Source: Macrostomum lignano
Taxonomy: Eukaryota
NCBI GenBank assembly: GCA_002269645.1
Contig: NIVC01003014.1
Coordinates: forward strand, 1 to 64,000
Length of the DNA stretch: 64,000 nucleotides
Direction: 5' to 3'
The position numbers and the translations under genes were made by a program. Under the pieces are notes generated by a model that made no database searches, had not been told where the DNA came from, and saw only the letters and a list, made by a program, of their open reading frames with translations. This document shows positions 38,536 to 63,237 of the stretch, one piece after another. How positions within the stretch are numbered: position 1 is the first letter of the stretch; each line of letters starts with the position of its first letter.

Positions 38536-41500
38536 ATGCATGCAGCCGATCACATGGTAGACAACTGCAAGCACGTCAGTCGAATTAAAGGCTGCGTGGA
38601 TTTGGGCCTATTGCAGCCAGAAAGGTGGAATTGTGCCGTGTGCTCAACTACAGAATCAGTTTGGGCCTGTCTGCACTGCCCCAATATTGCCTGCGGTCGC
38701 TATAATGAAGAGCACGCTTTGAAGCATCACCGGGATACTAAACATCCCTTGTCTATTGAGGTTAATGAGAAGTTCGTCTTCTGGTGAGTGCGATTCACTA
38801 ATTTGGCTATTATTGAATCTACCAACTCTACCATTGAATCTACCATCTCTACCATTGAATCTACCAACTCTACCATTGAATCTACCAACTCTACCATTAA
38901 ATCTACCAACTCTACCATTGAATCTACCAACTCTACCATTAAATCTACCAACTCTACCATTGAATCTACCAACTCTACCATTAAATCTACCATCAGTACC
39001 ATTGAATCTACCAACTTTACAGTTGAATCTACCAACTCTACCATTAAATCTACTAACTCTACCATTGAATCTACCAACTCTACCATTAAATCTACCAACT
39101 CTACCATTGAATCTACCAACTCTACCATTAAATCTACCATCAGTACCATTGAATCTACCAACTTTACAGTTGAATCTACCAACTCTACCATTAAATCTAC
39201 TAACTCTACCATTGAATCTACCAACTCTACCATTAAATCTACCAACTCTACCATTGAATCTACCAACTCTACCATTAAATCTACCATCAGTACCATTGAA
39301 TCTACCAACTTTACAGTTGAATCTACCAAATCTACCATTAAATCTACTAACTCTACCATTGAATCTACCAAATCTACCATTGAATCTACCAAATCTACCA
39401 TTGAATCTACCAACTCTACCATTGAATCTACCAACTGTACCATTGAAGCTACCGAATCTGCCTATTGAATCTACCAAATCTGTCATTGAATCTACTAAAT
39501 CTGTCATTGAATCTACCAAATCTGCCATTGAATCTACTAGATCTGCCATTGAATCTACCAAATCTGTCATTGAATCTACCAACTCTACCATTGAATCTGC
39601 CGCATATACTACTCTTTCCCAACAATTTTAGCTACGTCTGCGACGACTACATTCTCAACGACAACGCAGCTGGCGATATAAAAATCTTACGCATGGCGTT
39701 AGACGCAGTCGCAGCACAGAATTTATCTATACTGACTAATTGCAGTTTGCGCTCCCGGCTGCTCAGATCTCAGGCCGCCAATCCTAAGCAGTGAGTCGAT
39801 TTAATACGCTCTATATTCTGTTTTAAGTTTTCTTATGCCCCTATGTTCTTGTGACATTCAATCAGGCCTATAGTATGAAAAAAATCGACCCTACACTTCT
39901 CATACCTCAGAATCGCCCATATGATTCTCATATCTGAGAATCGCCTCTACAGTTCTAATGCGTTAGAATCGCCCCAATAATTCTCATGCGTGAGAATCGC
40001 CTCTACAATTTTCATGCTTTAGACTCGTCCCAATAATTCTCATGCGTGAGAATCGCCTCTACAATTTTCCTGCTTTAGACTCGTCCCAATAATTCTCATA
40101 CCTGAGAATTGCCCCTACAATTCTCATACGTGAGAATCGTCCCTATAATTCTCATGCGTGAGAATCGCCCCTACAATTCTCATGCGTGAGAATCGCCCTT
40201 ACAATTCTCATATCGAAGAATCGCCCCTACAATTCTCATGCGTGAGAATCGCCCTTACAATTCTCATATCGAAGAATCGCCCCTACAATTCTCATGCGTG
40301 AGAATCGCCCCTACAATTCTCATACCGAAGAATCGTCCCTATGATTCTCATGCGTGAGAATCGCCCCGATAATTCCCCTATTGCGCCATTGTGCGCAAGA
40401 CCTAGTGACTTATTTCTATTTTTAGAACTGACGTCACTCCCCGCCTTAGAGAAGGCAGGGGTTCGGAGACACGTGATTCCCTTGTAAACACGGGCCAGCG
40501 AGTGCTGTAAATATGTTTACTGCACTTTTGGGCTCCAAAAAAGCAAGGCCACCGACCGTGACCTCAAAAATGAAGCGAAGCGAACCAAAGAGCAGACCAG
40601 CAGCAGAGATGCCCTTGGCTGCAAACAAGAGCACAGAGGAAACGCGGAGACAGCAACCGAGGGCGAGGGAAACTGCTGACAGTAGGGCGACGCCTAACAC
40701 TAAACTAGCGGCTGACTACAGATAGTATATATAAACAATTAAATAGGACAAACCACTGTCATCTTGAAGCTTGAAGCGTGCAAATATTTCTATTGTCCCT
40801 GTGTTGTGCGTTCTATTTTTAGATTATGCTTTTTATGTAGCCTTAGCAACAAAAAGACACATTATAAAGTAAGTAAAAAAGTAATTATTTATAGTGTACT
40901 TAGTGTACTTTAGCTGCTGTTTCTATTTTTATATTTGCATCAATGTACAAATATGAATTCGTCATAAGATTGCGACATACTGTATATCATAACTTGGATT
41001 GAAAATGATTATAAGACATGGCAGAGCGTTTAGCAATAAAGAGGTTTGTTCTTCTCAATTATGGAACGATAATTTTCGAATTCATTTTCTAAATATTTTT
41101 TTAAACTGGCACAAACCAAACAGGAAAGCGCAGAACCTGATGCAAGCGGACCTGACCTATACAGCCCTGATGCTGCACAGGCGCTCTCGTCTATCCTGGT
41201 CTCTCAGACTCTGGCACAGCGCTATGCTCAGGCGTCGACCAGAAACCGTTGTTAAATTGGCGTCTGCTTTAACTGCCGCTTCTTCTACTAGTAGTAGTAG
41301 TCGTAGCAGTAGCGGCGCAGTTCAGACCGGCAGATTTGGCAGAGCCAGCAGCGCAAACGCCAGAGACCCGGCAAAGACAGAAAAATCGGCCATTTTAATC
41401 CTGCCGGGCACTACCGGCCTGCGCAATCTTGGCAACACCTGCTACATGAATTCGGTTGTGCAGATATTGAGCCACACGGACTCTTTAGCCGCTTATTTTA

Positions 41501-43386
41501 TCGATCATTTAACTCTGAATGGAGACGCGGGCACTGGTCGGGGCTCAGCAGTTGCTAGCCAGACGATTTGTAAATCGCCATCCTGCCCGGCTCATTTGGC
41601 CCGCCAATTTGGCAGCGGCAATGGTAGGAAATCTTTGAGGCGTCTCACTTCGGTAGAGTGCTTAGAATCTGTTGAGCAACAGCAGAGGCAGAAGGCATCG
41701 AAGCAGCAACAAGCGGCATCTTCTAGTAATAGCGGCGGTCTCAGCGGAGGCAGTCATCAGGCTAATAGTGTCAGAAATTCCGAAGCCATCGCCTATGCGG
41801 CTGAAGACGGTCCAACTGGCACGCTGGCTGAGGAGCTGCACGCTCTGTTCCGTGTGCTCTGGTCCGGCCGGCGGGCGGTTGTCTCGCCGCAGGGCCTTCT
41901 CACCTGCGTCTGGCGCCATGTGCCATTCTTTCGCGGCTATAAACAGCAGGATGCTCAAGAGTTCCTGTGCGAATTGTTGGACAGATTGCAGAAAGAGCTT
42001 AGCCAGGCTCAGAACATTGTGTCCAGTACATTCCAAGGCTCTTATTTGTCAACTGTTCGCTGTCTGCAATGCGGCAGATGCTCCCAGACTGAGGACATCT
42101 TCATGGACATATCGTTGGCTTTTCCCGAGAGCTGTCACACAGGTGAGCAGACCGAGTGTCAGCTAGCCGAGCTATTGAAACTATTCGCCAGAGAAACTGA
42201 GATTGAAGATCGAAGCTACCTATGCGAGACTTGCAACAGGTCGCCAATGTCGCAGCGAGCCAAGCGAGTGCCGCAATATTCCAAAGCTAGGCAACAGTTG
42301 CGAATTAAACGCTTGCCAAGGGTGCTCAGGCTGCATCTGAAACGATTCCGTTGGATTGGTAGGGCCCGAGAGAAAATCTGTGCCAGGGTGTGCTTTACTA
42401 GCCAGCTGGATGTGTCCTGCCTGCTGCCCGATGGCGAGTCCGCAGGAGAAGCAGGAGGCGGCAGCAACATCTATCACCTTACAGGTGTGGTTGTGCACCA
42501 CGGCAGAGGCTTTCAGTCTGGCCACTACACGTCATTCTGCTTCAATAAGGCTACTGGTGAGAGGAGCTGTATTTGATGTACGTCTGTAATTCTCAATAGA
42601 GTCGCCCCTTTAAGAATCGCCCCCTTAAGGAATCGCCCCCCCTTAGAAATCGCCCCCTTAGAAATCGCCCCCCTAAGCAATCGCCCCCCCCCCTGAGGAA
42701 TCGCCCCCCCCCCCTAAGGAATCGCCCCCTTAAGAATCGCCTCCCTAAGGAATCGCCCCCTTAAGAATCGCCTCCCTAAGGAATCGCCCCCCTTAGAAAT
42801 CGCCCCCCTAAGCAATCGCCCCCCCCCTGGGGAATCGCCCCCCCTAAGGAATCGCCCCCTTAAGAATCGCCTCCCTAAGGAATCGCCCCTTAAGACTCGC
42901 CCCCTTCGAAATCGCCCTCTAAGGAATCGCCCCCTTAAGGAATCGCCCCCTTTAGAATCGCCACTCCTTAGAATGATCATCGGCTACCTTAGCAAGTTCC
43001 AAGTTCACCTGCCAAGAATTGCCCAGCATCTCCCAAAACCCCTGCCTGTCGCTCCAACACCCGAAGGCTCTTGGCTTCACTGCAACGACGCGTTCGTCCA
43101 GCCGAGCAACCTTGACGAAGTACTGGCGTCACAGGCTTACATTCTGTTTTATACTCAAGATGAACAGCATGACCTGCCGTCGACTCCAGCATCCACTAGT
43201 AGCGGAGCCTCATCAAGCGTCGATCGACCACCTAAGCGAGCGTCGACGGCAGCGAGGCCGGCATCGCCGCCTCATGCAGTCGCTACCCTGAACAGCGGCA
43301 GCAACGGTCCCAAGATTACAACGCTGACTGTTAAACGGAGGCGAACTGGCAGTTCAACTGGCGGTTCTTCTATTGGTCGATCTTAA
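38536..43386 (+). CDS. USP44: USP44/USP49-like deubiquitinase, zf-UBP + USP catalytic domain (719 aa); exons 38536-38783, 39632-39790, 41124-42556, 43067-43386
   Basis: CKHV..W.C.VCSTTESVWACLHC..ACGRY.EEHALKH..VFC|YVCDDYILND; GLRNLGNTCYMNS; QQDAQEFL; VVHHGRGFQSGHY; WLHCND; exons sum to 2160 nt in frame. USP44 versus USP49 cannot be separated. Confidence 0.92.
38809..39598. repeat. 21-bp minisatellite in USP intron 1 (ATTGAATCTACCAACTCTACC)
   Basis: Direct reading; shows higher-order structure. Confidence 0.95.
39885..40372. repeat. 28-bp minisatellite in USP intron 2 (GAGAATCGCCCCTACAATTCTCATGCGT)
   Basis: Direct reading. Confidence 0.9.
42596..42972. repeat. ~17-21-bp minisatellite in USP intron 3 (AGGAATCGCCCCCTTA)
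   Basis: Direct reading. Confidence 0.9.
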
Positions 43387-46611: not shown

Positions 46612-46726
46612 AGCGGCACAAGTTCAGTACGGCACAAGTTCAGTACGGCACAAGTTCAGTACGGCACAAGTTCAGTAGTACGGCACAAGTTCAGTACGGC
46701 ACAAGTTCAGTACGGCACAAGTTCAG
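46612..46726. repeat. 16-bp minisatellite (CGGCACAAGTTCAGTA) starting at the lectin-1 stop codon
   Basis: About 7 copies. Confidence 0.9.
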
Positions 46727-47833
46727 TCGAACGGCGACAGGCACTCGCACAGCATGCCACGAGTAGAGAGATGACATCGGGAGCGAAGTCCCCGATTCCG
46801 GTGCCCCACATGCCGGCAAAGTTCTCAATATGGGGCATGTTGTCTCCAGGCTGACCGGCAGTCCACAGGGAGGCATTGATGGCGATGCCGCAGGGCTGCC
46901 AGCTCCAGCCTCCGGCCGGTTCCACACTGCCAGGCGCCTGAACTCCGCCAAGGAGCATGTCTCCTATGCCGGCCATGTACGTGTTGTACAGCTGCAGCAT
47001 GTGCAGCTTCTCAGCCTCACTGGTCACGTCCGACATCATCGCCAGGCCGCCATCCGTCTCGCATTTCTCTTTTCCTTGGTTCCAAGTCATGTAGGCTGGG
47101 GAGACAACGTTGTGCACCTTGTACTTCACTCCGCACAGGTCGTCTCCGTAGCCAGATGGACACAGCGCGCCCGCCTCGAGTCCCGGCTGCTGCTTCACAA
47201 ACACCCGGCCTCTCCTGGAGCAGCCGCAGTCCCTCACCGAATTGCTGCACCTGTCGAACACGAACAGCTGGCACGGACCGTCAGCCAGGCTGAAGGCCTG
47301 ACAGCGAGCGTTGTCATCACAAGCCAAGGCGCATCCGGTAGTGGGATTTCGAGTCACCAAGTTAGGAACCGTCTCCGTGAAGTCGGCCGTGATGCACAAG
47401 TAGCCGGTGATCAGGCTGTAGGTTTCCAGCGTTGCGCCTGAAAATCGATGGTAGTAAATTTTGAAATTCGGTCGCCGATGCCAATTCTGCACATTCCGCT
47501 GACCGCTGAGCATGTACATGTGCGCCAATATTGTAACGTACGGCACACACTCATGCACACACTCTCACAGGATGTACAGCGGGCCCTGACCGTCTAATCG
47601 TCAGACATGTACACTCCCTGTGCCTTGGAGTTCGGCATTCATGGCTGTGAATCGCACGGCAACCCCAAGTCGCAGCGCAAGAGTCAGACGCTGAGCTGCT
47701 CTGCCCCTGATACTCGTAGGCTAGATCGAGTTTTTTAATAATACCAGTATTTATGGTTCTTAAGGACCCTACCTGGAATCCGCAGAGCCAGAACGATAAT
47801 CGATAGCTTAGCCTGCACTTCGACTTTGGTCAT
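46723..47833 (-). CDS. Secreted PAN/apple-like + C-type-lectin-like protein, copy 1; exons 47833-47773 and 47437-46723; apparent frameshift at ~46765-46771
   Basis: Exon 1 MTKVEVQAKLSIIVLALRIP G|gtagg joins ttttcag|GC; GCALAC..CQAF..C (PAN-like); TWNQGKEKC..LLGG..WSW..WTAGQPGD. The conserved LCEC end is reached only after correcting a 2-nt CT gain. Confidence 0.75.
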
Positions 47834-48058
47834 TGTGCTTGTGTTTGATCAGAGCAAGATAGTTTTGAATTTTTTTGCAAACGGATTGTTTTACTCGTAG
47901 CTGCTTTGCGCACCTGCTTTTATAATAATTTTTCCATTGGCAAGCCACCTCCTTTGTTGCCATAACAGACGTGTGTTGTACAGCCAGTATTAAGAAAAAA
48001 TTGAGTAGCTGTACATCTATCCGACCTGCATTGACGTACGATGCAGCGTGAAGCTGGC

Positions 48059-48887
48059 TGTCACGTTATTGGCGTAGCGGCCAGCTATGCGGTGACCCTT
48101 AAAAGGGCCGTTTTAGTCCCGAAATAAGTTGAAGTCAATTCTTGTAAAGCGGATTTTGTAGCGGAGCACTTGGCGATAAAGGCAGGAACTGCCGTAGTTG
48201 TCTTTATTGTTAATATCAGTATTAAGTTTGGTTGTTACTGGCAATAAACAGACTATAGCTTTCTGGGCACTGGCGGCTGCAGCAATGGGTTGAATATAAT
48301 TTGGATATGAAGTCAAGTGGCAGGCGAATGACACAATGGCGACGTGACGTGAGCAGTGGCTATGAGCACCGTGAAGGCAGTGAAACGTAGTGGTGAGTAG
48401 GCGTCGGTCGTGGCGTGAAACAGTCAAGTAAGTGTGTGAGCAGGCTGGCCCAGACAGAAGGGCCGTGGTGAGAAATAAGGAGGCTCGAGGCAGCCAGACA
48501 AACAGATAAGACAGCTAAGAGGCCGCAGGGAAGGAAACAAGGGACAAGCGGGGAGAGACGAAAAAGGGGGTAGGGGTGCCCGCCGCCAGGCGGGGGGTTT
48601 AATAAAAGAGCGCAGAGGGGGGTAGCGCGAGCACGAGTGATTTCATTGGCTGGCGAGAGAACTTAAAATTATCGATCGTGCCAATTTTATACGGTCGCGA
48701 GAGAGGATAGCAAAATATACAGTGAATTAGAAATTGCCACAAAATCGTTGGGCACTACTACAAGTAAACGTCGCAATAAACGAATGGAAAAGTTTAGTTG
48801 AAACGGTGAAACTGAAGGGTTGAATGACTATGGAGAACAGCAGTCCAACGGCCCTTTTCGGGACCACCTTAAACTGACAACGTCACA
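48059..48887 (-). repeat. 3' LTR (829 bp)
   Basis: TGTCACGTT...AACGTCACA; differs from the 5' LTR only by small indels seen by eye. Confidence 0.97.
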
Positions 48888-48901
48888 CCCGCCTCCCTTC
48901 C
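48888..48901 (-). other. Polypurine tract GGAAGGGAGGCGGG
   Basis: Directly abuts the 3' LTR on the minus strand. Confidence 0.85.
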
Positions 48902-49132
48902 GAAAAAGGATAGGGTCGCGCAAAAAGAAAACCAACACGCGGGGTGACGGCAAGAAAAACACAACGTGACCGCAGTTTATGAAATTATAGCAGAGTGAAT
49001 TACAGTGGGGCTGAGTCAGTTTGTATGAGCATATGATTACCGGACAAAATTACAAAGTTCCAAAGGCTACAGACTATTACGAGAGCAGAACATTACAGGG
49101 CAGTAGAACACGGTGAGCACGAGCAATACAAC

Positions 49133-49804
49133 ATGGTGGTGTTACAAAAACATTACAAAATACAACAATGGTTACGGAAAGTAGTGCACGACGGAGCGCG
49201 CGGCGCGCGCGAACACAAAAACGACAAAGGACGCGCAGAAGTGATACGATGGATGAGGCAAACACAGAACAAGGATGACAAGGTGGATGAGGCAAAGGAT
49301 GCAGAGCAGAGGCACGGAACAGAGGCACAGTCCGGACAACTGCGGGCAAACGACGCCAAGCGTCAAGGGCGGCGGGACGCGGCGCGGCGCGCCAAGGCGG
49401 AAGGGAGAAACCGGCGCAAGAGCGCCCAAGGCGGAGACACGGCGCAGCGCGCCAAGGCAGAGACGGCGCAATGCGCCAGGCGGAGAACGGCGCAGCGCGC
49501 CAAGGCAAAGACGGCGCAGCGCGCCAGGCAGGAACGGCGCCACGCGCCAAGGCAGGAAACGGCGCAAGGGCGCCACGCGGGAACGGCGCCACGCGCCAAA
49601 CAGAGAACGGCGCCACGCGCCAGGCAGAGGATGGCGCCACGCGCCAGAGGCAGAGGATGGCGCTACGCGCCAAGGCAGAGGATGGCGCTACGCGCCAAAG
49701 GCAGAGGACGGCGCTGCGCGCCAAAGGCAGAGAGAGCGTGCGTGCGGTGCGGTGTGTGTGTGTGTAGTGCTTACTTTTACCCCACAAGAATTATATATAT
49801 CTAG
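49133..49804 (+). CDS. Antisense Arg/Ala-rich ORF (223 aa) inside the element, built partly on a GC-rich ~21-24-bp degenerate repeat
   Basis: ATG in an aacATGg context; track ORF; CGCGCCAAGGC repeats at 49380-49740. May be non-coding. Confidence 0.25.
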   Translation: MVVLQKHYKIQQWLRKVVHDGARGAREHKNDKGRAEVIRWMRQTQNKDDKVDEAKDAEQRHGTEAQSGQLRANDAKRQGRRDAARRAKAEGRNRRKSAQGGDTAQRAKAETAQCARRRTAQRAKAKTAQRARQERRHAPRQETAQGRHAGTAPRAKQRTAPRARQRMAPRARGRGWRYAPRQRMALRAKGRGRRCAPKAERACVRCGVCVCSAYFYPTRIIYI

Positions 49805-50052
49805 CTACATTATGAAATTTGCGAAATTTAATGACGAGCTACAGCTCATTTCCGACAACAGCGAAAGCGATGCTGCACTCGTCAATGGGCTGAGCAGCGA
49901 ACTAAGCTAGCTATATTCTTATAGGCAGAATATTTTTCTCGAGTTTTCAATGGTTGTTTTTTCAGTTTTTATTTTCCTTTTTGAGTTATTTATGCGTTTC
50001 ACTAGTCGCCAGTAGTTATGCTTTAATTACTAACCGTATATTGCACATTACA

Positions 50053-50436
50053 TGGTTTCGGGGTATTACTATTAGCGTCAGAGATGACGCACTTATTCAT
50101 TTCATCGACTTTGGCAACACCGAACGGGTGCCATTGCTATCAATTATTTTAATCATTTTTGCCATTGCTATAATGTTTATACGTGCCCTAGTGTATTTTA
50201 TCGATTATGGCAACGCCGATGCAGGCAGAGGACGTCTACAGAATATTTTGACAACTATTATATTTATAGTATTCATCTCGTAATCATTTTTCGACCAATA
50301 TATGCATTATTTTATGCCATATTTATGCATTAATTTTTTAGTTTACTTTTGAATATTTGAGCTAAGGCTAATGTCTTATCTACTATTTGTTTCTAGCGCC
50401 GTAGTGTATTCTATAGACTACGGCAACGCCGACCAG
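50053..50436 (+). pseudogene. Three Tudor-domain-like segments antisense to gag-pol
   Basis: WFRGITISVRDDALIHFIDFGNTERVPL (50053-50136), ALVYFIDYGNAD (50185-50220) and AVVYSIDYGNADQV (50398-) match the Tudor W.R....V.F.DYGN.E.V pattern. Confidence 0.6.
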
Positions 50437-50718
50437 GTGCAGTCGGAGTTGGGTGCTGCGATATTATATATATTCTTGCGTTAGAACAATATAGTATTTA
50501 TACTGTCGGCATATTATGCTAATTCTGCTAGTGTTTTATTTTTATTTTATTTATTTTAGTTAGCTATATAAATTATCAAATTGCAATGTCGCCGCAGTTT
50601 ATCCCCTTGACTACGGTGGTTGGCTGTTGGCTGGTACAGCTGTGGAAGTTGTGCACACTAGTATCTGGCAGTGAGTAACAGCTGTGGCTTGTGTTTTGTG
50701 GCTTGCGGCTGGCAGATG

Positions 50719-51023
50719 CCGCAGGGACCTGTGACCAACAGGTGCCACAGGAGGTAGTTTAACGCCTTGCCCGGGGCGTGAGCTTGCGGTCTACAGGTGC
50801 CGCAGAGACCTGTGGCTGACAGGTGCCACAGGAGGTAGTTTTACGCCTTGCCCGGGGCGTGAACTTGCGGTCTACAGGTGCCGCAGAGACCTGTGGCTGA
50901 CAGGTGCCACAGGAGGTAGTTTTACGCCTTGCCCGGGGCGTGAACTTGCGGTCTACAGGTGCCGCAGAGACCTGTGGCTGACAGGTGCCACAGGAGGTAG
51001 TTTTACGCCTTGCCCGGGGCGTG
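50719..51023. repeat. 81-bp tandem repeat (about 3.7 copies) just downstream of the pol stop
   Basis: GCCGCAGAGACC at 50799, 50880 and 50961. Confidence 0.95.
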
Positions 51024-51035
51024 AAAAACTGGCGG

Positions 51036-54000
51036 TTAGTGTCTGCTTCCCCACTGCTGGAGCAGGTCGGACACTTGACAGGTCCGGTACCTGACAGGCG
51101 GGCGGATGGGGCGTCCGTACCTGGATCTGGGTACGTCAGCCGGGGCTGGTGGCTCAGCTGCTTGCGCAGCGACTGGATTCGCAGCAATCTCAGGTGGTTC
51201 TAATTGCTCGGAGGAAGGGTCCCCCAAGGAAGCCGTGTACAGCGACTCTGAGCTGTCTTGGCTGTGGCTGGTGTCAGTGTCTGTGCTGTCAGTGTCAGTG
51301 TCTGGTTGTGGCTGTCCCTCAATAGCTACAGCATCGCCAGCTTCGGCGAATGGTTGGCCTTCTCCCGCTTCAGCTCCCGCCCCCTCCTCAAAGGCGCCTG
51401 AAGCTGGCGGTGGTGGATTTGGCCCTGGCGCTCTGCGTGGGCTCTCTGGCCGGGCAGAGGAAGGCTGGGGAATGGTGACGAGGCTAAGCTCGCTCGCGGG
51501 TCCGCTGGGCGGGTTCACACTAGGCGCTGGAGACCTGGCATGGGTGGCCTCACCATACCGGTCAACTACGTCTTGGTAAGTGGGCTGTCTGATGCACGGT
51601 TTGAGGCGGTCAATGTTGTAAATGTTATGGCGCGGATTTGGCACCCGATCTGCTGGGTTTAGGAGACCATACTCGGGGACTAAACGGTAAGTCCGCTCGG
51701 AGCAGCGCTGCACTACTCGGTATGGCCCCAACCACACAGCGGGTTCTATGCCCTTGTGGTTCGGGTTCAAGACCCAGACTAACTCTCCCTCGTGGAACTC
51801 AGCGCGGAGGGCGCGGCGGTCGTAATACCTTTTCTGCCTCTCCTGGGCTTTACCCCTAGTGCGGCGGGCTAGGGCAGAGGTTTCGACTAGCGTGCGGTGC
51901 AACTGGTGGGCGTACCTCTCCGGCTGGTAGTGTTCATTTGGCGGTGGATTGTGACAGAGGTCGAGCGGTAGTTCGAACTCACGCCCGAAGAAAAGTTTGG
52001 CTGGAGTAAATCCGGTGGATTCGGCGACTGTGGCACGGATTGACAGGGCGGCCAGGCGGCTGGCAAGGGGCCAGTCGCATTGTCTCTCAAGACAGATGGC
52101 TCTAATCTGGGCTTTCACCGTCTGGATCATCCTCTCAGCTTTACCGTTAGCCTGAGGGCGACGGGCTGTGATCCGACCCATGTCAATCTGTAGGAGCCTA
52201 GTTAATTCTATCATGGTACTATTGATGAAGGCAGTTCCGTTATCAGACACCAGCTGCTCCATCACCCCATACCTGGCAACCCATTCAGTCAGGATGGTTG
52301 TGGCAGTGGTCTCTGCGCTGACGTCGGGAACAGGGACTACTTCAACAAACCCGGTGAACCTGTCGATCATAACCAGCAGGTACTTGTACCCGTCACACTC
52401 TTCGAACGGGCCTGCGTGGTCCACGTGGACAACCTGGTTCGGGTAGCCGGACAGTTCTGGTTGCATAGGGGCCTTGAGCTTACGCTTTGACTTCTTAGTC
52501 TTAGCGCAAACGGTGCATTCGGCCAGGACCCCCTTGACTATAGTATCTAAGTCGGAAATAACGAAGCGCGCCTTCAGGGCGGCCATCGTCTTGGTGATAC
52601 CGCAATGGTTCAACTGGCCATGATACTGAAGGACCAGATGACCGACGTCTGCGGTCTCAGGCACCACCAGGCGCCTGTTGGCAGTCTTGGCTTTGGAGGA
52701 TTTGGCTAAGTACAATAGACCCTCGACTACTTCAAGGTCATTGAATTGAGCCCAGAGTGAGCGCATTTCCCGGCTACAACCCTGCAGTTCGGCCTTGGAC
52801 AATGGCTCAGTCTTACACTGGACACTGGCGATTAGGCGCGCCATGTCAACACAGGAGTCCTGGGCATTCTGGGCCCAGATGAGCTCAGGTGGCACTTGGG
52901 ATTCGGTTTCAGGTTGACGGGATTCAGTCTCTGGGCTAGGAACAGCACCGCTAGCAGTAGCGCGGACATTCGGCGTTGGTTCAGCCGGGGCATCTGTGTC
53001 AGTCTGACACGCTACGCTAATGCCTATGGTCTGGACGCACACCTGACGCAGTTCTCTAGAGGGGGGCGTACGCCGGTGCTTTGGGTCTTGGTCCAGGAAT
53101 TTCCCTTTAAATTCCGGAATCTGGCTGCACGTCGGGCAGTCAAAGTGATCGGCTCTGAATTTTGGCAGTCTACTAAGAGCGTCAGCAGGCACGTGGTCAA
53201 CGCCTGGACGGTACTGGACTGTGAAATCGTATTCGGCTATTCGTTCTAGAGTGGACTGCTGGACCTTCAGCGGGTACAGTTCAATGGTGGCAAGCCATTG
53301 GGCCAGCATACCAGTGGCATGCTTCTTAGAATGCAGCCATTTGAGCGCGGCCGCGTCCACCCGGACAGTGAAAGGCTTGTCTAATAGATAAGGACGGAAA
53401 TGCTCGAGCATCAGAACGAGCCCTAGCAACTCCCTCATGGTGGCGCAGTAGTTTCTCTGGCTACTGTTGAATTTTTTGGATGCGTAAGCTATAACTTGCT
53501 CTTGGCCATCTGGCCCGAGCTGGTACAGCACACCCCCAGTGCCGTCAAGCGAGCTATCGCAGTCCAAAATAAATTCGCGCCCTTTGGCAGAGAGGTCTGG
53601 ATACGCCAGAATCGGTGGTGAACAGAGGCTATGTTTGAGTTCTTGGAAAGCCCGTTCATGATGCGGTTGCCATAGAAACGGAGCATCCTTTTTGGCTAAG
53701 GCATACAAAGGCGTGGCGATGATTGAGAATCGCGGCACGAATTTCCGGTAATAATTCGCAAATCCCAAGAATGATAGAAGCTGTTTCTTAGAAAGCGGTT
53801 TAGGCCAGTCTTGGACAGCCTGAGTCTTCGCTGGGTCAGCCTCAATGCCCCGGCTAGACACAACGAACCCCAGGAATGCGACCTTGTCCTTAAACAGCTC
53901 ACACTTAGACGGCTTAATTTTGAGACCGGCTTTTCTAAGCTGCCAGAGGACCAGCGCGAGATGCGCGATCATTTGGTCGTTGTTGACAGCCTTAATGATA

Positions 54001-56801
54001 ATGTCGTCTAAATAGATGAGGCTGACCTTCATCAGGAGAGGTCTAAACACCTTGTGCATCAGTTTCGCGAAATTGGCAGGTGCCGTCTTGATCCCGAATG
54101 GTACTACCTTCCAGCGGAAGGTGCCTTGGGGGCAGGCAAAGGCGGTGTAATCTCTAGCCTCCTCTTTGATCCCTACCTGCCAGTACGCGGAGGTCAGGTC
54201 AAGGCTAGAGAATACAGTGGCCCCGGCAAGGCTGTCAAAAGATTCTTCTATGAGTGGCAGAGGGAAGCTACACGGCTTGATGAGCTTATTGACGGCCCTA
54301 TAGTCTATGCAAAGGCGTTGAGTGCCGTCCTTCTTCTTGACCAGAACGATAGGCGACACCCAGTCAGAGTCACACTCCTCAATGACCCCCTGTTCGAGCA
54401 TCTGCGCTATGTTCTGGTCTAAGAATTCTTTTTGTGCTGGCGTGGTGCGCCTGTATGGTTGCGCAACAGGCTTGGCCTTAGGATCTATTAACTCTATGCC
54501 CATCTCGTGTAAATTGGTGTGGCCTAAATCTGCGTTTGATCTAGAAATTTGGCTATTGAAGTAGTTGAGCAGTTTCAAAACGGTGGCGAGTTGGCCCCTA
54601 GACAATTTGGCTTGGTCTAGTTGGAACTGCGTTGTCAGCCATTTGGCTAACTCCCTACTAGGCGGCGGCAGCTTACTGAGTTGGCTGGTGAGGTTAGCTA
54701 CATTGTCCAGGCTAAAGTCAGACTCCTTCAGGGTCGTCTGAGCTATGACCTCATGACTATCTAATTCCTGGAATGAGGCAATTTCTTGCCCCCTAGTTAT
54801 CTGAATAGGCTGTTCCCCACTGTTGAGCACGCGCACTAGTATGTGGTTAGTATCGCTAACTGAGTCTAGAGTCTTGGCTACCAACTGTTCGGTCTCTGGT
54901 CCGAGGATCCGGGACATGACTATACCGGAGGTGTACGGCGAAGAGTCGAGGACACGACTGGGGATCAAGGTTTCCGAGTGCGGGGGCAATTCTACGGTGC
55001 CGGCGGCCATCACTCGTCGGAGTTGGAAAATCCCCTTGTCCCCCTCAATGACTGGTACCGACACCCCTGCTACTAAAGCTCGGCCAGAGTTGAAGTCTAG
55101 CAGCATCTCGAAGCTGCGCAGGAAATCCATGCCTAACAGGGCTTCCGTGGTACAGTAAGCAGTGACTAGGAATACATGTTGTTTAGTCGTATTACCTAAG
55201 TTGATTTCGCAGCGTAGCGACCCTAGGATGTCTACCTGAGAGCCGCCGAAGGCGGTGGCACGCTGCTTATTGGCACTAGGCGTGAATATGTTATTGACGG
55301 GGTCAGCTGCGACCAGTTTGGCTTTCACGTCAGCACCCATGATGCTGGCATTGGCGCCTGAGTCTAGACAGGCCAGAACTTTAGAGTCTCCTACTCCTAG
55401 CTGCACGAAATAGCTAGACTCAAAGGTGTCAGCTGTGTACCCCCCTTGTCGGCATTGTGGATCACTGTCCCCTGGCTGAGGTTGCACATTACAGGCCTTG
55501 TCGTGCTGGCGCCCGGGGTCGACCTGGCGCTGGAATTTCACCCTAGTCCCCCTAAGGCGGTGCTGCTCGACTAGGCTACGCAGGCTGGGAGACAGTTGGC
55601 TAATGTGAACGAACAATTTCTCTGGCAGGTGCTCAGATTGGATGAACCCGTAATTCTGAGACCATGTGGCAATGGTTCCTAGTTCAGTCGTGACTTTTCC
55701 ACGGCTGGGCTGCTGATTTTGGCTCCCCCGGGGCTGCTTTGGCGACTGTGGCCTCGGCGAGGGCGATGGACAGTCAGCGATCAGGTGATCGGTCTGGCCG
55801 CATCGATGGCAAGCCCGCGGAGGGCGAGGAGCTGGCCTAGGTTGTCTATAGGTTTGGCTAACTTGTGGTGGGCCCCCAGTGGGCTCTGTGCGAGCGGGCC
55901 CCTGATTGGTAGTGACAGGCGGAGTGGTCTGGCTTAATCTATTGGCTTGGTCGGTCACCATCTTCTCAAGCTCAGCGACCCTCTGTTCTAACGCTTTCTT
56001 CTCAGCGTCAGGTTCTATGGCACGAACCTTGGCTATAGTAGAAGGCACGTTCAGAAGCTGGCGGACCCCGACAAGATCTTTGGCCTTCTGCATCAGCTCT
56101 TCTGCAGAGGTGGCACTGTCGGTTTCCTGATCCCATAAGAGGAGCTTTTCGGCGAGGTCCTTATCCCTCAGCCCATGGCAGAATCTGGCCTTGAGTAGGG
56201 GCTTCGCTTCAGCGAGCGAGAGACCCGCTAGTCTAGAATAGGAGACCAGTCTGTCGAAGAAATCAGACATCTGCTCATTATGAGATTGGGCGGCAGCAAC
56301 TAATTCTACGTAGGCCTTGTCCTTCTTCTTGGCATCGGTGTACCTTTCCCTGAGCAGCCGAAGCGCAGATTCGAAAGGCAACTGGTCACACCGGTAATTA
56401 AGATATACCTCTTGGCATTCGGCTGACAGCAAAGATACGAGAATGGCGGACTTCTGGTCCTCAGGAACGCGGCAAGTGGCTAGATACGAAGTAAGCTGAG
56501 CTTCCCACGTATCAAAGTTCATCTTCGGCTGATAAGCGATTGGAGGGCGAAGGCGTATGTCTGGCTTCGCAGGCGGCGAGGAATTTGGCGCTAATGGCGA
56601 GGAAACAGCGAGACGCTCTTCGAGCATCCGGTGAAGAGAGGCTAAGGTTTGAGTCAACAAGAGTTGCTCACTAGGAGCTGGCGCGGCGGCAGCAGCTGCG
56701 CCTGCTGGCTGCTCGCCGGCATCGACTGCGTCCTGATCTGGCACGGCGGCATCTCCGTCAGCCAATGACGCTGCGGCATGGTTGTCCCCGTTGTCGGACA
56801 T
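51036..56801 (-). CDS. Gag-Pol polyprotein (1921 aa): capsid-like region, CCHC knuckle, cold-shock-like domain, aspartic protease, RT, RNase H, integrase with GPY/F
   Basis: CHRCGQTDHLIADC (55770-55811); LDSGA (~55360); YLDD (54003-54014); DCDSS..YASK..RELL; HGQLNH..CTVC; VHVDHAGP; LGPYRV. Confidence 0.98.
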   Translation of the reverse strand: MSDNGDNHAAASLADGDAAVPDQDAVDAGEQPAGAAAAAAPAPSEQLLLTQTLASLHRMLEERLAVSSPLAPNSSPPAKPDIRLRPPIAYQPKMNFDTWEAQLTSYLATCRVPEDQKSAILVSLLSAECQEVYLNYRCDQLPFESALRLLRERYTDAKKKDKAYVELVAAAQSHNEQMSDFFDRLVSYSRLAGLSLAEAKPLLKARFCHGLRDKDLAEKLLLWDQETDSATSAEELMQKAKDLVGVRQLLNVPSTIAKVRAIEPDAEKKALEQRVAELEKMVTDQANRLSQTTPPVTTNQGPARTEPTGGPPQVSQTYRQPRPAPRPPRACHRCGQTDHLIADCPSPSPRPQSPKQPRGSQNQQPSRGKVTTELGTIATWSQNYGFIQSEHLPEKLFVHISQLSPSLRSLVEQHRLRGTRVKFQRQVDPGRQHDKACNVQPQPGDSDPQCRQGGYTADTFESSYFVQLGVGDSKVLACLDSGANASIMGADVKAKLVAADPVNNIFTPSANKQRATAFGGSQVDILGSLRCEINLGNTTKQHVFLVTAYCTTEALLGMDFLRSFEMLLDFNSGRALVAGVSVPVIEGDKGIFQLRRVMAAGTVELPPHSETLIPSRVLDSSPYTSGIVMSRILGPETEQLVAKTLDSVSDTNHILVRVLNSGEQPIQITRGQEIASFQELDSHEVIAQTTLKESDFSLDNVANLTSQLSKLPPPSRELAKWLTTQFQLDQAKLSRGQLATVLKLLNYFNSQISRSNADLGHTNLHEMGIELIDPKAKPVAQPYRRTTPAQKEFLDQNIAQMLEQGVIEECDSDWVSPIVLVKKKDGTQRLCIDYRAVNKLIKPCSFPLPLIEESFDSLAGATVFSSLDLTSAYWQVGIKEEARDYTAFACPQGTFRWKVVPFGIKTAPANFAKLMHKVFRPLLMKVSLIYLDDIIIKAVNNDQMIAHLALVLWQLRKAGLKIKPSKCELFKDKVAFLGFVVSSRGIEADPAKTQAVQDWPKPLSKKQLLSFLGFANYYRKFVPRFSIIATPLYALAKKDAPFLWQPHHERAFQELKHSLCSPPILAYPDLSAKGREFILDCDSSLDGTGGVLYQLGPDGQEQVIAYASKKFNSSQRNYCATMRELLGLVLMLEHFRPYLLDKPFTVRVDAAALKWLHSKKHATGMLAQWLATIELYPLKVQQSTLERIAEYDFTVQYRPGVDHVPADALSRLPKFRADHFDCPTCSQIPEFKGKFLDQDPKHRRTPPSRELRQVCVQTIGISVACQTDTDAPAEPTPNVRATASGAVPSPETESRQPETESQVPPELIWAQNAQDSCVDMARLIASVQCKTEPLSKAELQGCSREMRSLWAQFNDLEVVEGLLYLAKSSKAKTANRRLVVPETADVGHLVLQYHGQLNHCGITKTMAALKARFVISDLDTIVKGVLAECTVCAKTKKSKRKLKAPMQPELSGYPNQVVHVDHAGPFEECDGYKYLLVMIDRFTGFVEVVPVPDVSAETTATTILTEWVARYGVMEQLVSDNGTAFINSTMIELTRLLQIDMGRITARRPQANGKAERMIQTVKAQIRAICLERQCDWPLASRLAALSIRATVAESTGFTPAKLFFGREFELPLDLCHNPPPNEHYQPERYAHQLHRTLVETSALARRTRGKAQERQKRYYDRRALRAEFHEGELVWVLNPNHKGIEPAVWLGPYRVVQRCSERTYRLVPEYGLLNPADRVPNPRHNIYNIDRLKPCIRQPTYQDVVDRYGEATHARSPAPSVNPPSGPASELSLVTIPQPSSARPESPRRAPGPNPPPPASGAFEEGAGAEAGEGQPFAEAGDAVAIEGQPQPDTDTDSTDTDTSHSQDSSESLYTASLGDPSSEQLEPPEIAANPVAAQAAEPPAPADVPRSRYGRPIRPPVRYRTCQVSDLLQQWGSRH

Positions 56802-57191
56802 TGTGTAAGGTTGAGTGAGACAAATGAATCAAGCGTGAACGAAAATAAGGCTCCAGAGAAAACGAATTGAGGTTGATGACGCGAGAGAGACGAGAGAGAT
56901 TGCGTCCTACTAACAAAATACGTGCCTGACAGGGGCAAACCGCAAAAAGCCTATAATAGGGGAGAGTCCTATCACGCAAACCACCCAGACTAACTGTCAG
57001 GCAATAGTCCCTACAAACAATCAGCGCACAGCGTAACCTGGCGTGGCTTGGCACACGCAGCGGAGCTATCTTGGCAGAGCGTAAGCTCGAGCTCAACGCA
57101 GTTGACAGCGCGCGTTGCTCAGGGCGACGACCAGCGACGACTCGCGGCGACGAGCGAAGACCGGCCGAGCAGTCAGGACCCCTGGGCCTGA

Positions 57192-57305
57192 CGTGGCACA
57201 GGCTCTCGTAGCCTTGCGGACCGAACCTCAGGCGTGGCACAGGCTCTCGTAGCCTTGCGGACCGAACCTCAGGCGTGGCACAGGCTCTCGCAGCCTTGCG
57301 GACCG
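57192..57305. repeat. 41-bp tandem repeat in the element 5' leader
   Basis: CGTGGCACAGGCTCTCG at 57192, 57233 and 57274. Confidence 0.9.
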
Positions 57306-57419
57306 TCAGGCAGAAACGTGGCAGGCCGGCACTCAGTCACGAGCCGGCAGAGCTGAGCAGAATCTTGCTGACGCTTGGTTGCGAGCTGGCAGGGCTGAGC
57401 AGAAGTCTTGATGGCACTG

Positions 57420-57556
57420 ACTTAGTTGCGAGCCGGCAGTGCTGAGTAGGAGTCTCGGTGGTGCTGACTTAGTTGCGAGCCGGCAGTGCTGAGTAGGAGT
57501 CTCGGTGGTGCTGACTTAGTTGCGAGCCGGCAGTGCTGAGTAGGAGTCTCGGTGGG
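57420..57556. repeat. 47-bp tandem repeat x3 overlapping the PBS
   Basis: TCTCGGTGG at 57453, 57500 and 57547. Confidence 0.9.
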
Positions 57557-57563
57557 ACCTCCA
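57547..57563 (-). other. Primer-binding site complementary to the tRNA-Gln 3' end (TGGAGGTCCCACCGAGA)
   Basis: Plus strand TCTCGGTGGGACCTCCA equals the 3' end of eukaryotic tRNA-Gln plus CCA; it lies 6 nt from the LTR. Confidence 0.85.
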
Positions 57564-57569
57564 AAATTA

Positions 57570-58400
57570 TGTCACGTTATTGGCGTAGCGGCCAGCTATG
57601 CGGTGACCCTTAAAAGGGCCGTTTTAGTCCCGAAATAAGTTGAAGTCAATTCTTGTAAAGCGGATTTTGTAGCGGAGCACTTGGCGATAAAGGCAGGAAC
57701 TGCCGTAGTTGTCTTTATTGTTAATATCAGTATTAAGTTTGGTTGTTACTGGCAATAAACAGACTATAGCTTTCTGGGCACTGGCGGCTGCAGCAATGGG
57801 TTGAATATAATTTGGATATGAAGTCAAGTGGCAGGCGAATGACACAATGGCGACGTGACGTGAGCAGTGGCTATGAGCACCGTGAAGGCAGTGAAACGTA
57901 GTGGTGAGTAGGCGTCGGTCGTGGCGTGAAACAGTCAAGTAAGTGTGTGAGCAGGCTGGCCCAGACAGAAGGGCCGTGGTGAGAAATAAGGAGGCTCGAG
58001 GCAGCCAGACAAACAGATAAGACAGCAAGAGGCCGCAGGGAAGGAAACAAGGGACAAGCGGGGAGAGACGAAAAAGGGGGGGTAGGGGTGCCCGCCGCCA
58101 GGCGGGGGGGTTTAATAAAAGAGCGCAGAGGGGGGTAGCGCGAGCACGAGTGATTTCATTGGCTGGCGAGAGAACTTAAAATTATCGATCGTGCCAATTT
58201 TATACGGTCGCGAGAGAGGATAGCAAAATATACAGTGAATTAGAAATTGCCACAAAATCGTTGGGCACTACTACAAGTAAACGTCGCAATAAACGAATGG
58301 AAAAGTTTAGTTGAAACGGTGAAACTGAAGGGTTGAATGACTATGGAGAACAGCAGTCCAACGGCCCTTTTCGGGACCACCTTAAACTGACAACGTCACA
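57570..58400 (-). repeat. 5' LTR (831 bp)
   Basis: As for the 3' LTR. Confidence 0.97.
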
Positions 58401-58885
58401 TGGCGGTTGCTATGGCAATACGAGGCCTGTGTTAACCCACCTACCCACGCATTTTCTCTTGCTGCCTTCCCACCCCCAACCCTACGACTCCACGACCCCC
58501 ATTTGTTTTAGCGATTGACGCGTCCTGATCAAGCTTTGACGTTTGTTATAATTTTATGATTCAGCGCAGGCTATTAAGGCCTCCAGTCCATATTTCATTT
58601 AGTCCCTGCCGGAGTCCCTGTAGCGTCCCAGTCGCCTCACATGATGCCCTAGCATCTATTATAATTTCGTAATATTTTTAAACCCAGACGGCACGAAAGA
58701 ATTTAAAATTTTTGGCTTCATTTTTTTATTTTAATGCGTTGCCTCTTCCAAAGCGGAATCAATTATTCCGGCACTCAATGTAGGAGCTTTCAATGCCTCT
58801 CATTTAAATTGGGAATAAAACCATGGAATAAAATTTATCAGCTAGCTCTGGGCAATTTAGAGGACTGTAGTGAGTGTTGGATATA

Positions 58886-62325: not shown

Positions 62326-62469
62326 ATGCAAGTATATCAGATCTAGGCAACTTAACACAAACTCAGAAACTTTTACACTGTATAATTCTGAACCAGTTGG
62401 CTCTATAAAATACTAAGTTAATTGGTGCCTCAAAATAGGTGAGGCGTTCAACTCATCTGCAGTGGCAGC

Positions 62470-63237
62470 TCAGTGGAATGGCGACAAGCACTCGCACAGC
62501 ATGCCACGAGCATTGCCTGCGGCAGGATCAAAGTCCCCGATTCCGGTGCCCCACTTGCCGGCCACATTCTCAATATGGGGCATGTTGTTTCCAGGCTCTC
62601 CGGCAGTCCACTGGGAGGCATTGATGGCGATGCCGCAGGGCTGCCAGCTCCAGCCTCCGGCCGGTTCCACACTGCCAGGCGCCTGAACTCCGCCAAGGAA
62701 CATGTCTCCTATGCCGGCCATGTACGTGTTGTACAGCTGCAGCATGTGCAGCTTCTCAGCCTCACTGGTCACGTCCGACATCATCACCAGGCCGCCATCC
62801 GTCTCGCATTTCTCTTTGCCTTGGTTCCACGTTATTGTGTCTGGCCATAGGACGTTGTGCACCTTGTACTTCACTCCGCACAGGTCGTCTCCGTAGCCAG
62901 ACGGACACAGCGCGCCCGCCTCGAGTCCCGGCTGCTGCTTCACAAACACGCGGCCTCTCCTGGAGCAGCCGCAGTCCCTCACCGACTTGCTGCACCTGTC
63001 GAACACGAACAGCTGGCACGGACCGTCAGCCAGGCTGAACGCCTGACAGCGCAGCCTGCGGCCGCACTGAGCAGCGCAAGTGGTGGCAGTCTTGGCACCT
63101 GGAGCAGTTTCAATAAACTCACTGTTGATGCACAGAAAGCCCTCGATCCGATGGAATTCGTCCTTGGTAAACCCGTGCCGCGAAGGAACGATTGCAGCCA
63201 GCACAATAAGCAGTTTTGAAAATTTTATCCAAAGCAT
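62470..63237 (-). CDS. Secreted PAN/apple-like + C-type-lectin-like protein, copy 2 (255 aa, intronless)
   Basis: Signal peptide MLWIKFSKLLIVLAAIVP; TCAAQC..CQAF; TWNQGKEKC..FLGG..WSW..WTAGEPGNN..GIGD..LCEC. Confidence 0.85.
   Translation of the reverse strand: MLWIKFSKLLIVLAAIVPSRHGFTKDEFHRIEGFLCINSEFIETAPGAKTATTCAAQCGRRLRCQAFSLADGPCQLFVFDRCSKSVRDCGCSRRGRVFVKQQPGLEAGALCPSGYGDDLCGVKYKVHNVLWPDTITWNQGKEKCETDGGLVMMSDVTSEAEKLHMLQLYNTYMAGIGDMFLGGVQAPGSVEPAGGWSWQPCGIAINASQWTAGEPGNNMPHIENVAGKWGTGIGDFDPAAGNARGMLCECLSPFH

Follow-up and report, generated by a model that had tools for sequence, protein, structure and literature searches.

A stretch of 64,000 nucleotides from the genome of the flatworm Macrostomum lignano (contig NIVC01003014.1, positions 1 to 64,000 of the forward strand; hereafter, the window) contains a complete Ty3/gypsy-type long terminal repeat (LTR) retrotransposon of 10.3 kb, which lies on the minus strand at 48060–58400. 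In the untranslated tail of this element, between the pol stop codon at 51036 and the 3′ LTR at 48887, there is an AT-rich block in which four short segments of the opposite strand resemble the core of the Tudor domain. On balance, this block appears to be a non-coding relic of DNA that encoded Tudor domains of the germline, extended-Tudor type, now lying antisense in the 3′ untranslated tail. A first-pass annotation of the window had described a retrotransposon with Tudor-like sequence antisense in its 3′ region, and both the nature of the element and the location of the sequence were borne out. The three segments that it had marked were likewise found where it had placed them, all on the plus strand and in a single frame.

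Tudor likeness of the segments

Segment 1 corresponds to strands beta1–beta3 of the Tudor domain (W-F-R ... HFIDFGNTERVPL). Against the Pfam TUDOR family (PF00567), it scores 17.6 bits alone, while the natural read-through of segments 1 and 2 reaches 23.8 bits, where the gathering score is 23, and an artificial concatenate of the segments reaches 30.6 bits. Taken alone, the Pfam result is marginal, since the E-value of 1.3e-4 for a 125-residue fragment has to be multiplied by the approximately 2000 fragments of the window, over all families. When segment 1 was compared with the 177,635 sequences of the PDB, there were four matches at E<10, two of them to TDRD1, one to maternal tudor, and one to a fly Tudor protein, so that no protein other than a Tudor protein was matched. 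A phmmer search with a 35-residue stretch against 1.84 billion representative proteins returned 361 proteins at E<=0.001. The best 150 of these 361 are mostly 1400–4500 residues long and contain up to 14 separate matched stretches each; their summed scores overstate the evidence, as repeats within one protein are not independent. For 20 of the top proteins, the clusters were examined, and these 20 are tudor, TDRD1, TDRD6, or TDRD15 proteins, or unnamed. Their sources include Hydra, a sponge, a brachiopod, a nemertean, an abalone, a crinoid, amphioxus, arthropods, and others. The 13 named proteins all come from phyla other than flatworms, and the remaining seven are unnamed ENA predictions.

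In addition, a Tudor-core hidden Markov model (HMM) of 102 positions was built from 400 domains cut around a generic D[YF]GN anchor. The background consisted of all stop-to-stop fragments of the window and of nine loci from the same genome, amounting to 7277 fragments, 347,000 residues, and about 220 kb. With this model, segment 1 scores 26.7 bits (E = 1.4e-6 over the 7277 fragments), and the best background fragment scores 5.9 bits, which is also below the scores of segments 2 and 3 (Table 1). In a shuffle test of segment 1, the best of 3000 shuffles reached 5.1 bits, against 29.5 bits for the real sequence. The model is partly circular, as its source proteins were retrieved with segment 1. 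Nevertheless, these are the proteins richest in Tudor repeats, and the margin is approximately 20 bits. Judged by these profile and database comparisons, the Tudor likeness of segment 1 is genuine and specific, far above both background and shuffles. The Tudor-core match proposed in the first-pass annotation thus stands, and the profile matches are significant.

The closest resemblance is to the extended Tudor domains of tudor and TDRD1/6/15. Segment 1 matches their beta1–beta3 core (WYRA...V.FVDYGN.E.V..L), and single Tudor domains of distant animals are 50–65% identical to it over 26–32 residues. In contrast to those domains, only about 33 of approximately 180 residues are present, with neither the remainder of the barrel nor the SN-like flanks. 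The aromatic cage of Tudor domains is made of four aromatic residues plus an Asn, and it binds methyl-arginine. By eye, segment 1 presumably retains the Asn and three of the four aromatic positions (the F of WFR and both F residues of HFIDFGN, whose N is the Asn); the first aromatic residue is taken to fall in the upstream strand that the segment lacks.

When all six reading frames of the 64 kb are scanned for the motif [VILA]x[YFH]x[IVL]D[YF]G, there are four occurrences, each of which lies in the block. At the DNA level, the likeness among the four segments is limited to a core of 27–46 nt, outside of which the flanks are unalignable. Within this core, the segments differ pairwise by 14–26%.

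Distribution and composition of the block

The family was sampled as the copy in the window plus seven copies on other contigs of the same assembly, which were retrieved via their gag-pol proteins. The block is present in all eight at 99.3–99.9% identity, except for one diverged tract in copy L002, so the other copies do carry the segments, a point on which the first-pass annotation had made its reading depend. In the two nearest sister families (L005 and L006, whose gag-pol is 57–59% identical), the tails have neither similarity to the block nor a D[YF]GN motif; they measure up to 1.5 kb and contain tandem repeats and AT-rich stretches of their own. Because it occurs in all of the copies and is absent from the sister families, the block is, on the sequences sampled, a fixed and family-specific component.

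The diverged tract of L002 covers approximately 120 bp (49835–49957 of the window vs L002:12751–12833) and is about 25% divergent within sequence that is otherwise 99% identical. It contains two indels, which appear as insertions of 26 and 8 nt. Over the first 13 codons of the tract, almost every change is synonymous (Leu CTA and CTC to TTG), and a 4-bp stem is kept; the Leu-codon swaps can equally be read as compensatory changes in this stem. The tract therefore implies that a second, diverged lineage of the block exists in the genome and recombines with the present one. No independent copy of the block was found in the approximately 220 kb of M. lignano genome that were examined.

The tail as a whole is non-coding and 2.1 kb long. 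Read from pol, it consists of 81-bp repeats, the AT-rich block, a (GT)n tract, GC-rich 24/26-bp repeats, and a purine-rich stretch. The GC content of the block (35%) differs from that of the open reading frame (ORF; 55%), the LTR (49%), and the flanking repeats (62–73%), the other parts of the element spanning 49–73% overall. Internally, the block is a mosaic in which islands with 44–56% GC alternate with spacers of 20–30% GC. By composition, this mosaic resembles either exons and introns or the AT-rich non-coding DNA found elsewhere in the window. Its edges are sharp, bordered by (GT)n at one end and by tandem repeats at the opposite end, and the short motifs AGCTAGCTATAT and CAGAATATTTT are repeated within it. 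The block was also considered as a nested transposon, a candidate that was set aside given that there are no terminal inverted repeats or target-site duplication (TSD) at its borders. A scan of the block against Rfam gave no match.

Island 0, the short frame at the 3′-LTR end of the block, has neither a Tudor nor any other Pfam signal. It was tried as the N-terminal part of an extended Tudor domain (MKFAKFND...) and discarded, as Pfam is silent whether the island is taken alone or joined to segment 1. An antisense ATG-started frame of 211 codons (49275–49910, plus strand) stays open across the GC-rich 24/26-bp repeats, where it encodes an Arg-rich repeat peptide, and ends in MKFAKFND...; this frame is probably an artefact of the repeats.

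Sequence constraint

Variation in the gag-pol ORF carries a clear coding signature: among the copies, 0.14% of cells differ, and the variable sites are distributed 6:8:29 by codon position. In the block, 0.66% of cells and 2.3% of sites differ, which is no less than at third positions of the ORF (1.5% of sites) and far more than across the full ORF. The LTRs, the 5′ untranslated region (UTR), and the GC-rich repeats are approximately 3% different among copies, a figure that partly reflects misalignment of repeats and variant LTRs. Of the changes in or beside the segments, one is synonymous, and the other three replace T with I, Y with N, and V with A; the Tyr to Asn change lies in segment 2 of copy L007 and turns DYGN into DNGN. 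The numbers are small, and the copies are too alike (<=1% different) to give selection tests power, although the present-day changes in the block look neutral.

Differences among the segments themselves give a hint of an older history. As the first-pass annotation had reported, segments 2 and 3 differ at four synonymous third positions: six of 36 bases differ, of which four are synonymous third-position differences and two are non-synonymous. The past coding constraint that it read from them is suggestive at most, since the third-position share (4/6) has a binomial p of about 0.1, the variable sites across segments 1–3 are distributed 4:2:8 by codon position (p = 0.058), and a palindrome confounds the comparison. 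In effect, the DNA of segment 3 at 50398–50424 forms an 11/12-bp palindrome (GCCGTAGTGTAT TCT ATAGACTACGGC), whose hairpin has z = -3.3 and folds better than 200 of 200 shuffles. Of the six differences between segments 2 and 3, four (three synonymous and one non-synonymous) fall on the bases that complete this palindrome. A hairpin conserved across the segments was rejected: the folding of segments 1, 2, and 4 does not exceed that of shuffles, and where these segments differ, pairs are disrupted and no change is compensatory. If real, the third-position bias could equally have arisen in the host. Separate captures would show such a bias because host Tudor domains differ mostly at synonymous sites.

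Coding potential

The Tudor-like sequence amounts to about one third of the core (positions 36–68 of the 102 in the Tudor-core HMM, or 67–97 of 121 in Pfam). For the missing parts, fragments from all frames within 2.5 kb reach 2 bits at most. Consequently, the complete barrel core of approximately 60 residues that, together with SN-like flanks in one ORF, makes up an extended Tudor domain is not found here. Stop codons lie on both sides of the segments and are common to all of the copies. The four segments repeat the same strands and are not complementary; therefore, splicing them together cannot build a barrel.

The splice-like signals do not add up to a coherent model. The ctaat (50368–50372) and tttgtttctag (50386–50396) that had been noticed ahead of segment 3 are indeed present, and segment 3 follows a good acceptor-like tract. 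A TACTAAC box (50028–50034) precedes segment 1, but there is no AG acceptor, and the equivalent position has been lost at segment 2. There is also a TATA-like stretch and an ATG at 49812; downstream of this ATG, past island 0, L002 is frame-shifted with respect to the other copies.

Searches for a product gave nothing. The annotation of the submitters places no gene over the block in any of the eight copies, and an exact look-up of the 109-codon ORF (109 aa) returned no recorded sequence. Neither the 86-aa read-through nor all of the islands joined had a match among 5.8 billion predicted proteins, and no annotated protein, whether from M. lignano or from another organism, has enough exact 5-residue words in common with them to score. 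With no intact ORF and no gene call, the block lacks the intact, conserved, and expressed antisense ORF that characterizes a retroelement antisense gene. The first-pass annotation had envisaged a spliced antisense gene, which does not agree with one third of a Tudor core, shared stops, no coherent splice model, and no annotated gene or protein. The protein decoy that it had also proposed fails for similar reasons, as the segments repeat the same strands, the rest of the domain is not found within 2.5 kb, and no protein matches.

The host element and its surroundings

The assignment of the element to the Ty3/gypsy type follows from LTRs ending in TG..CA, a TSD, a primer-binding site, a polypurine tract, and the order gag-PR-RT-RNaseH-IN. 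Direct repeats of approximately 830 bp (48059–48887 and 57570–58400) are 99.5% identical and, on the minus strand, start with TGTGAC and end with GTGACA. A 4-bp TSD, TGGC, flanks the element at 48056–48059 and 58401–58404. The intact gag-pol encodes a PNMA-like capsid, a CCHC knuckle, a cold-shock domain (CSD), PR, RT, RNaseH, and IN, in this order, and the element is env-less. The exact gag-pol protein sequence occurs on a single public contig, NIVC01003014.1 of assembly GCA_002269645.1 (with the accession prefix of the Mlig_3_7 genome), and its coordinates there agree with those in the window; the nearest relatives of the protein all bear the name of M. lignano, a free-living flatworm. The family is young and transposition-competent.

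Table 1. Features of the element and of the Tudor-like segments in its tail, with positions in the window.
Feature	Position	Strand	Basis or remarks
Segment 1, ITWFRGITISVRDDALIHFIDFGNTERVPL	50047..50136	+	30 codons (33 with the following LSI); Pfam, Tudor-core HMM, PDB, phmmer
Segment 2, ALVYFIDYGNAD	50185..50220	+	Partial copy in the frame of segment 1; 12.1 bits; DNA repeat family D1
Segment 3, AVVYSIDYGNADQV	50398..50439	+	Partial copy in the frame of segment 1; 13.0 bits; inverted repeat I2
Segment 4, AAVYPLDYGG	50591..50620	+	Weakest partial copy, other frame; newly found in this analysis
AT-rich block, ~850 bp, 35% GC	49767..50620	+	Composition; contains every Tudor-like segment
Island 0, short ATG-started frame (MKFAKFNDELQLI...) past TATATATA stretch	49812..49910	+	Strongly diverged in L002
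81-bp tandem repeats, ~4 units	50702..51106		Directly past the pol stop
GC-rich 24/26-bp tandem repeats, 73% GC, then (GT)n	49412..49735		Bound the block on the 3′-LTR side
Ty3/gypsy-type LTR retrotransposon	48060..58400	-	99.5% LTR pair, TG..CA ends, TSD, domain order
5′ LTR, 831 bp	57570..58400	-	
3′ LTR, 828 bp	48060..48887	-	
Primer-binding-site-like TGGAGGTCCCACCGAGA	57547..57563	-	6 nt past the 5′ LTR; read from the sequence; candidate
Polypurine tract GGAAGGGAGGCGGG	48888..48901	-	Adjoins the 3′ LTR
gag-pol ORF, intact, 1921 aa	51036..56801	-	Uninterrupted frame

The CSD lies in Gag after the PNMA-like capsid and the CCHC knuckle (residues 375–441; 55479–55679, minus strand), and it scores 28.7 bits in Pfam with a cut-off of 27. 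The two sister families have no CSD, and a search of the full-text literature found no paper that describes such a domain in the Gag of an LTR retrotransposon. By its profile match, this family seems to have also acquired, in frame, a nucleic-acid-binding domain of host type. Compared with copies L002–L004 and L007–L009, the gag-pol ORF of the element is 99.86% identical, the LTRs and UTRs are approximately 3% different, and the LTRs of L004 are partly different. This pattern suggests that LTRs and UTRs may have been shuffled among subfamilies around a near-invariant coding core.

An outer pair of direct repeats (46720–47309 and 62467–63055), 93% identical and 15.7 kb apart, encloses the element and may be an older non-autonomous LTR element that the present one invaded. 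Satellite-like arrays are also enclosed by these repeats or lie near them, with units of 30 bp (58.7–59.7 kb), 21 bp (60.0–60.4 kb), 27 bp (61.7–62.3 kb), and 14 bp (63.6–63.9 kb). Upstream of the element, there are two host genes: a homologue of TTI1 (TELO2-interacting protein 1) in a single frame of 962 codons (33435–36323, plus strand) and a USP/UCH deubiquitinase (40999–42576, plus strand). At both ends of each LTR, Rfam reports sub-threshold matches to the histone 3′ stem-loop (48085–48114 and 57596–57625 on the minus strand; 48845–48891 and 58358–58403 on the plus strand), which, at 18–21 bits with a cut-off of 34, are probably chance hairpins.

Origin of the block

Under the favored explanation, foreign and probably host genomic DNA would have entered an ancestor of the family. 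Read-through transcription followed by template switching, as in retroviral transduction, would be the likely route, although insertion or recombination may also have served. The antisense orientation would have let the intron-like AT-rich spacers survive passage through the RNA of the element; such an orientation is expected because intron-bearing DNA must survive in a spliceable RNA. The core motif may then have been multiplied, or acquired several times, long before the recent burst of the family, given that the segments differ by 14–26% and the element copies by less than 1%. At present, the block would be copied passively along with the element.

Several observations weigh against a dead relic of host DNA. 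The probable host origin has no parent to point to among annotated proteins, and none close enough exists among the 5.8 billion predicted ones; the lack of a near-identical annotated host protein also argues against a long nucleotide identity to an annotated Tudor mRNA. In addition, segment 1 is unusually near the Tudor consensus for an old, unconstrained relic, and its identity to single Tudor domains reaches 65% in the case of a nemertean. The third-position excess (4:2:8, p = 0.058) could signal some constraint. The same could be true of the persistence of GC-rich islands among AT-rich spacers, as well as of the retention of four versions of just the most conserved motif. Furthermore, weak selection on the block remains compatible with copies that are so similar.

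The palindrome of segment 3 raises the question of whether any of this ever encoded a Tudor domain. The unit GCCGTAGTGTAT-TCT-ATAGACTACGGC might merely happen to read V-x-Y-x-I-D-Y-G, which would fit its 11/12-bp pairing and its folding beyond all 200 shuffles, the reading AVVY.I.YG on both strands of segment 3, the three of four synonymous differences that perfect it, and the marginal Pfam E-value (1.3e-4 for the 125-residue fragment, to be multiplied by some 2000 fragments). Such a chance or structural motif is unlikely, and as an explanation of the whole block it is rejected: folding is confined to segment 3, differences in segments 1, 2, and 4 break pairs without compensation, and segment 1, the least palindromic, has W-F-R upstream and GNTERVPL downstream at proper Tudor spacing and scores 26.7–29.5 bits, against 5.9 for background and 5.1 for shuffles. 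It is also quite unlikely that the capture was second-hand, the block being a nested piece of another mobile element or pseudogene that already held decayed Tudor exons when it inserted into the family ancestor. The sharp compositional edges with their (GT)n and tandem repeats, the recurrence of AGCTAGCTATAT and CAGAATATTTT, and the second block lineage implied by the L002 tract are in keeping with this history, but the edges have no terminal inverted repeats or target duplication, and the approximately 220 kb examined hold no independent block. Less probable still is a functional spliced antisense gene whose Tudor-like peptide would act as a decoy for PIWI or for partners that bind symmetric dimethylarginine (sDMA). 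Here, the lack of an AG before segment 1, the loss of the acceptor at segment 2, the duplication of the same strands with about one third of the core within 2.5 kb, the different frame after island 0 in L002, the lack of an annotated gene, recorded ORF, or matching protein, and the non-synonymous changes in the motif between copies outweigh the acceptor-like tract before segment 3, the TACTAAC box before segment 1, the common frame of segments 1–3, the TATA-like stretch with its ATG at 49812, and the three of four cage positions plus Asn that segment 1 would retain in comparison with SND1 and Tudor structures.

A further possibility is counter-defence of the TART/nxf2 type, in which small RNAs derived from the element and antisense to host Tudor mRNAs would dampen the PIWI-interacting RNA (piRNA) pathway. 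The sense RNA of the element does contain, in reverse complement, four versions of the most conserved Tudor motif that differ in their codons; all eight element copies carry the four cores antisense to the element mRNA, and the differences between segments lean to third positions. There is a precedent in Drosophilid telomeric retrotransposons with captured fragments of piRNA-pathway genes (PMC7785250; PMC13534243), and M. lignano combines a very large germline expansion of Tudor and PIWI with a recent burst of LTR elements (PMC12147562). Nevertheless, this role would be unlikely, as the cores measure only 27–46 nt, and no annotated protein scores, so that long near-identity to an annotated host mRNA is not to be expected; besides, at approximately 80% identity, captured fragments in Drosophila have ceased to target piRNAs to the host gene (PMC7785250; PMC13534243). 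More speculatively, the four islands might act as a degenerate antisense probe set against many members of the expanded host Tudor family at once, given that the reverse complement of V-x-F-I-D-Y-G-N is kept in the element mRNA in four versions that differ mainly synonymously. This seems very unlikely; if true, it would extend anti-silencing of the TART/nxf2 type to an LTR element and to a whole gene family as its target.

Relation to known systems and significance

In flies, TART-A has captured part of nxf2, and telomeric elements of Zaprionus and of the D. auraria group have captured pieces of aub and piwi (PMC7785250; PMC13534243). These fragments lie in UTRs, are often amplified up to 8-fold inside the element, and are carried by all copies; piRNAs map from them to the host gene when the identity is high, and not at approximately 80% (PMC7785250; PMC13534243). 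The present block is similar in that it would be a fragment of a gene family central to the piRNA pathway, lies in an untranslated region, occurs in all copies, and is multiplied inside the element. Unlike it, the fly elements are non-LTR and telomeric, and their fragments are hundreds of bases long, with 79–100% identity to an identified host gene and mapped piRNAs. Here, in contrast, the carrier is a flatworm LTR element, the cores measure 27–100 nt, the segments have diverged from one another, and no host parent was found among predicted proteins.

Retroviruses and LTR retrotransposons are known to transduce host sequence through read-through and template switching, and gene fragments are captured in a comparable manner by elements of the maize Bs1 type. 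As in classical transduction, the presumably foreign block is placed downstream of pol and ahead of the 3′ LTR, is found in every descendant copy, and has a composition unlike that of the element; in contrast to it, where the captured sequence is in sense orientation, spliced, and often expressed, the block is antisense, has intron-like spacers, and lacks an open frame. Antisense genes also exist in retroelements, such as the additional antisense ORFs of plant Ty3/gypsy elements and the antisense genes of deltaretroviruses. The block shares with these its position near the 3′ end and the strand opposite gag-pol, but they are intact and conserved ORFs with promoters of their own, and the block has no intact ORF. 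The capture of gene fragments by retrotransposons is a known kind of event, and the block is most likely a further example.

If the block is only a dead relic, which is judged likeliest, it would represent ordinary gene-fragment transduction and would be useful mainly as a marker of the family. If it is a captured piece of Tudor sequence, it would be, to our knowledge, the first case in which a transposon found elsewhere than in flies, and belonging to the LTR elements, carries sequence from the piRNA machinery that keeps it in check. In that event, the idea of an arms race would become testable in a transgenic, regenerating flatworm with expanded Tudor and PIWI families.

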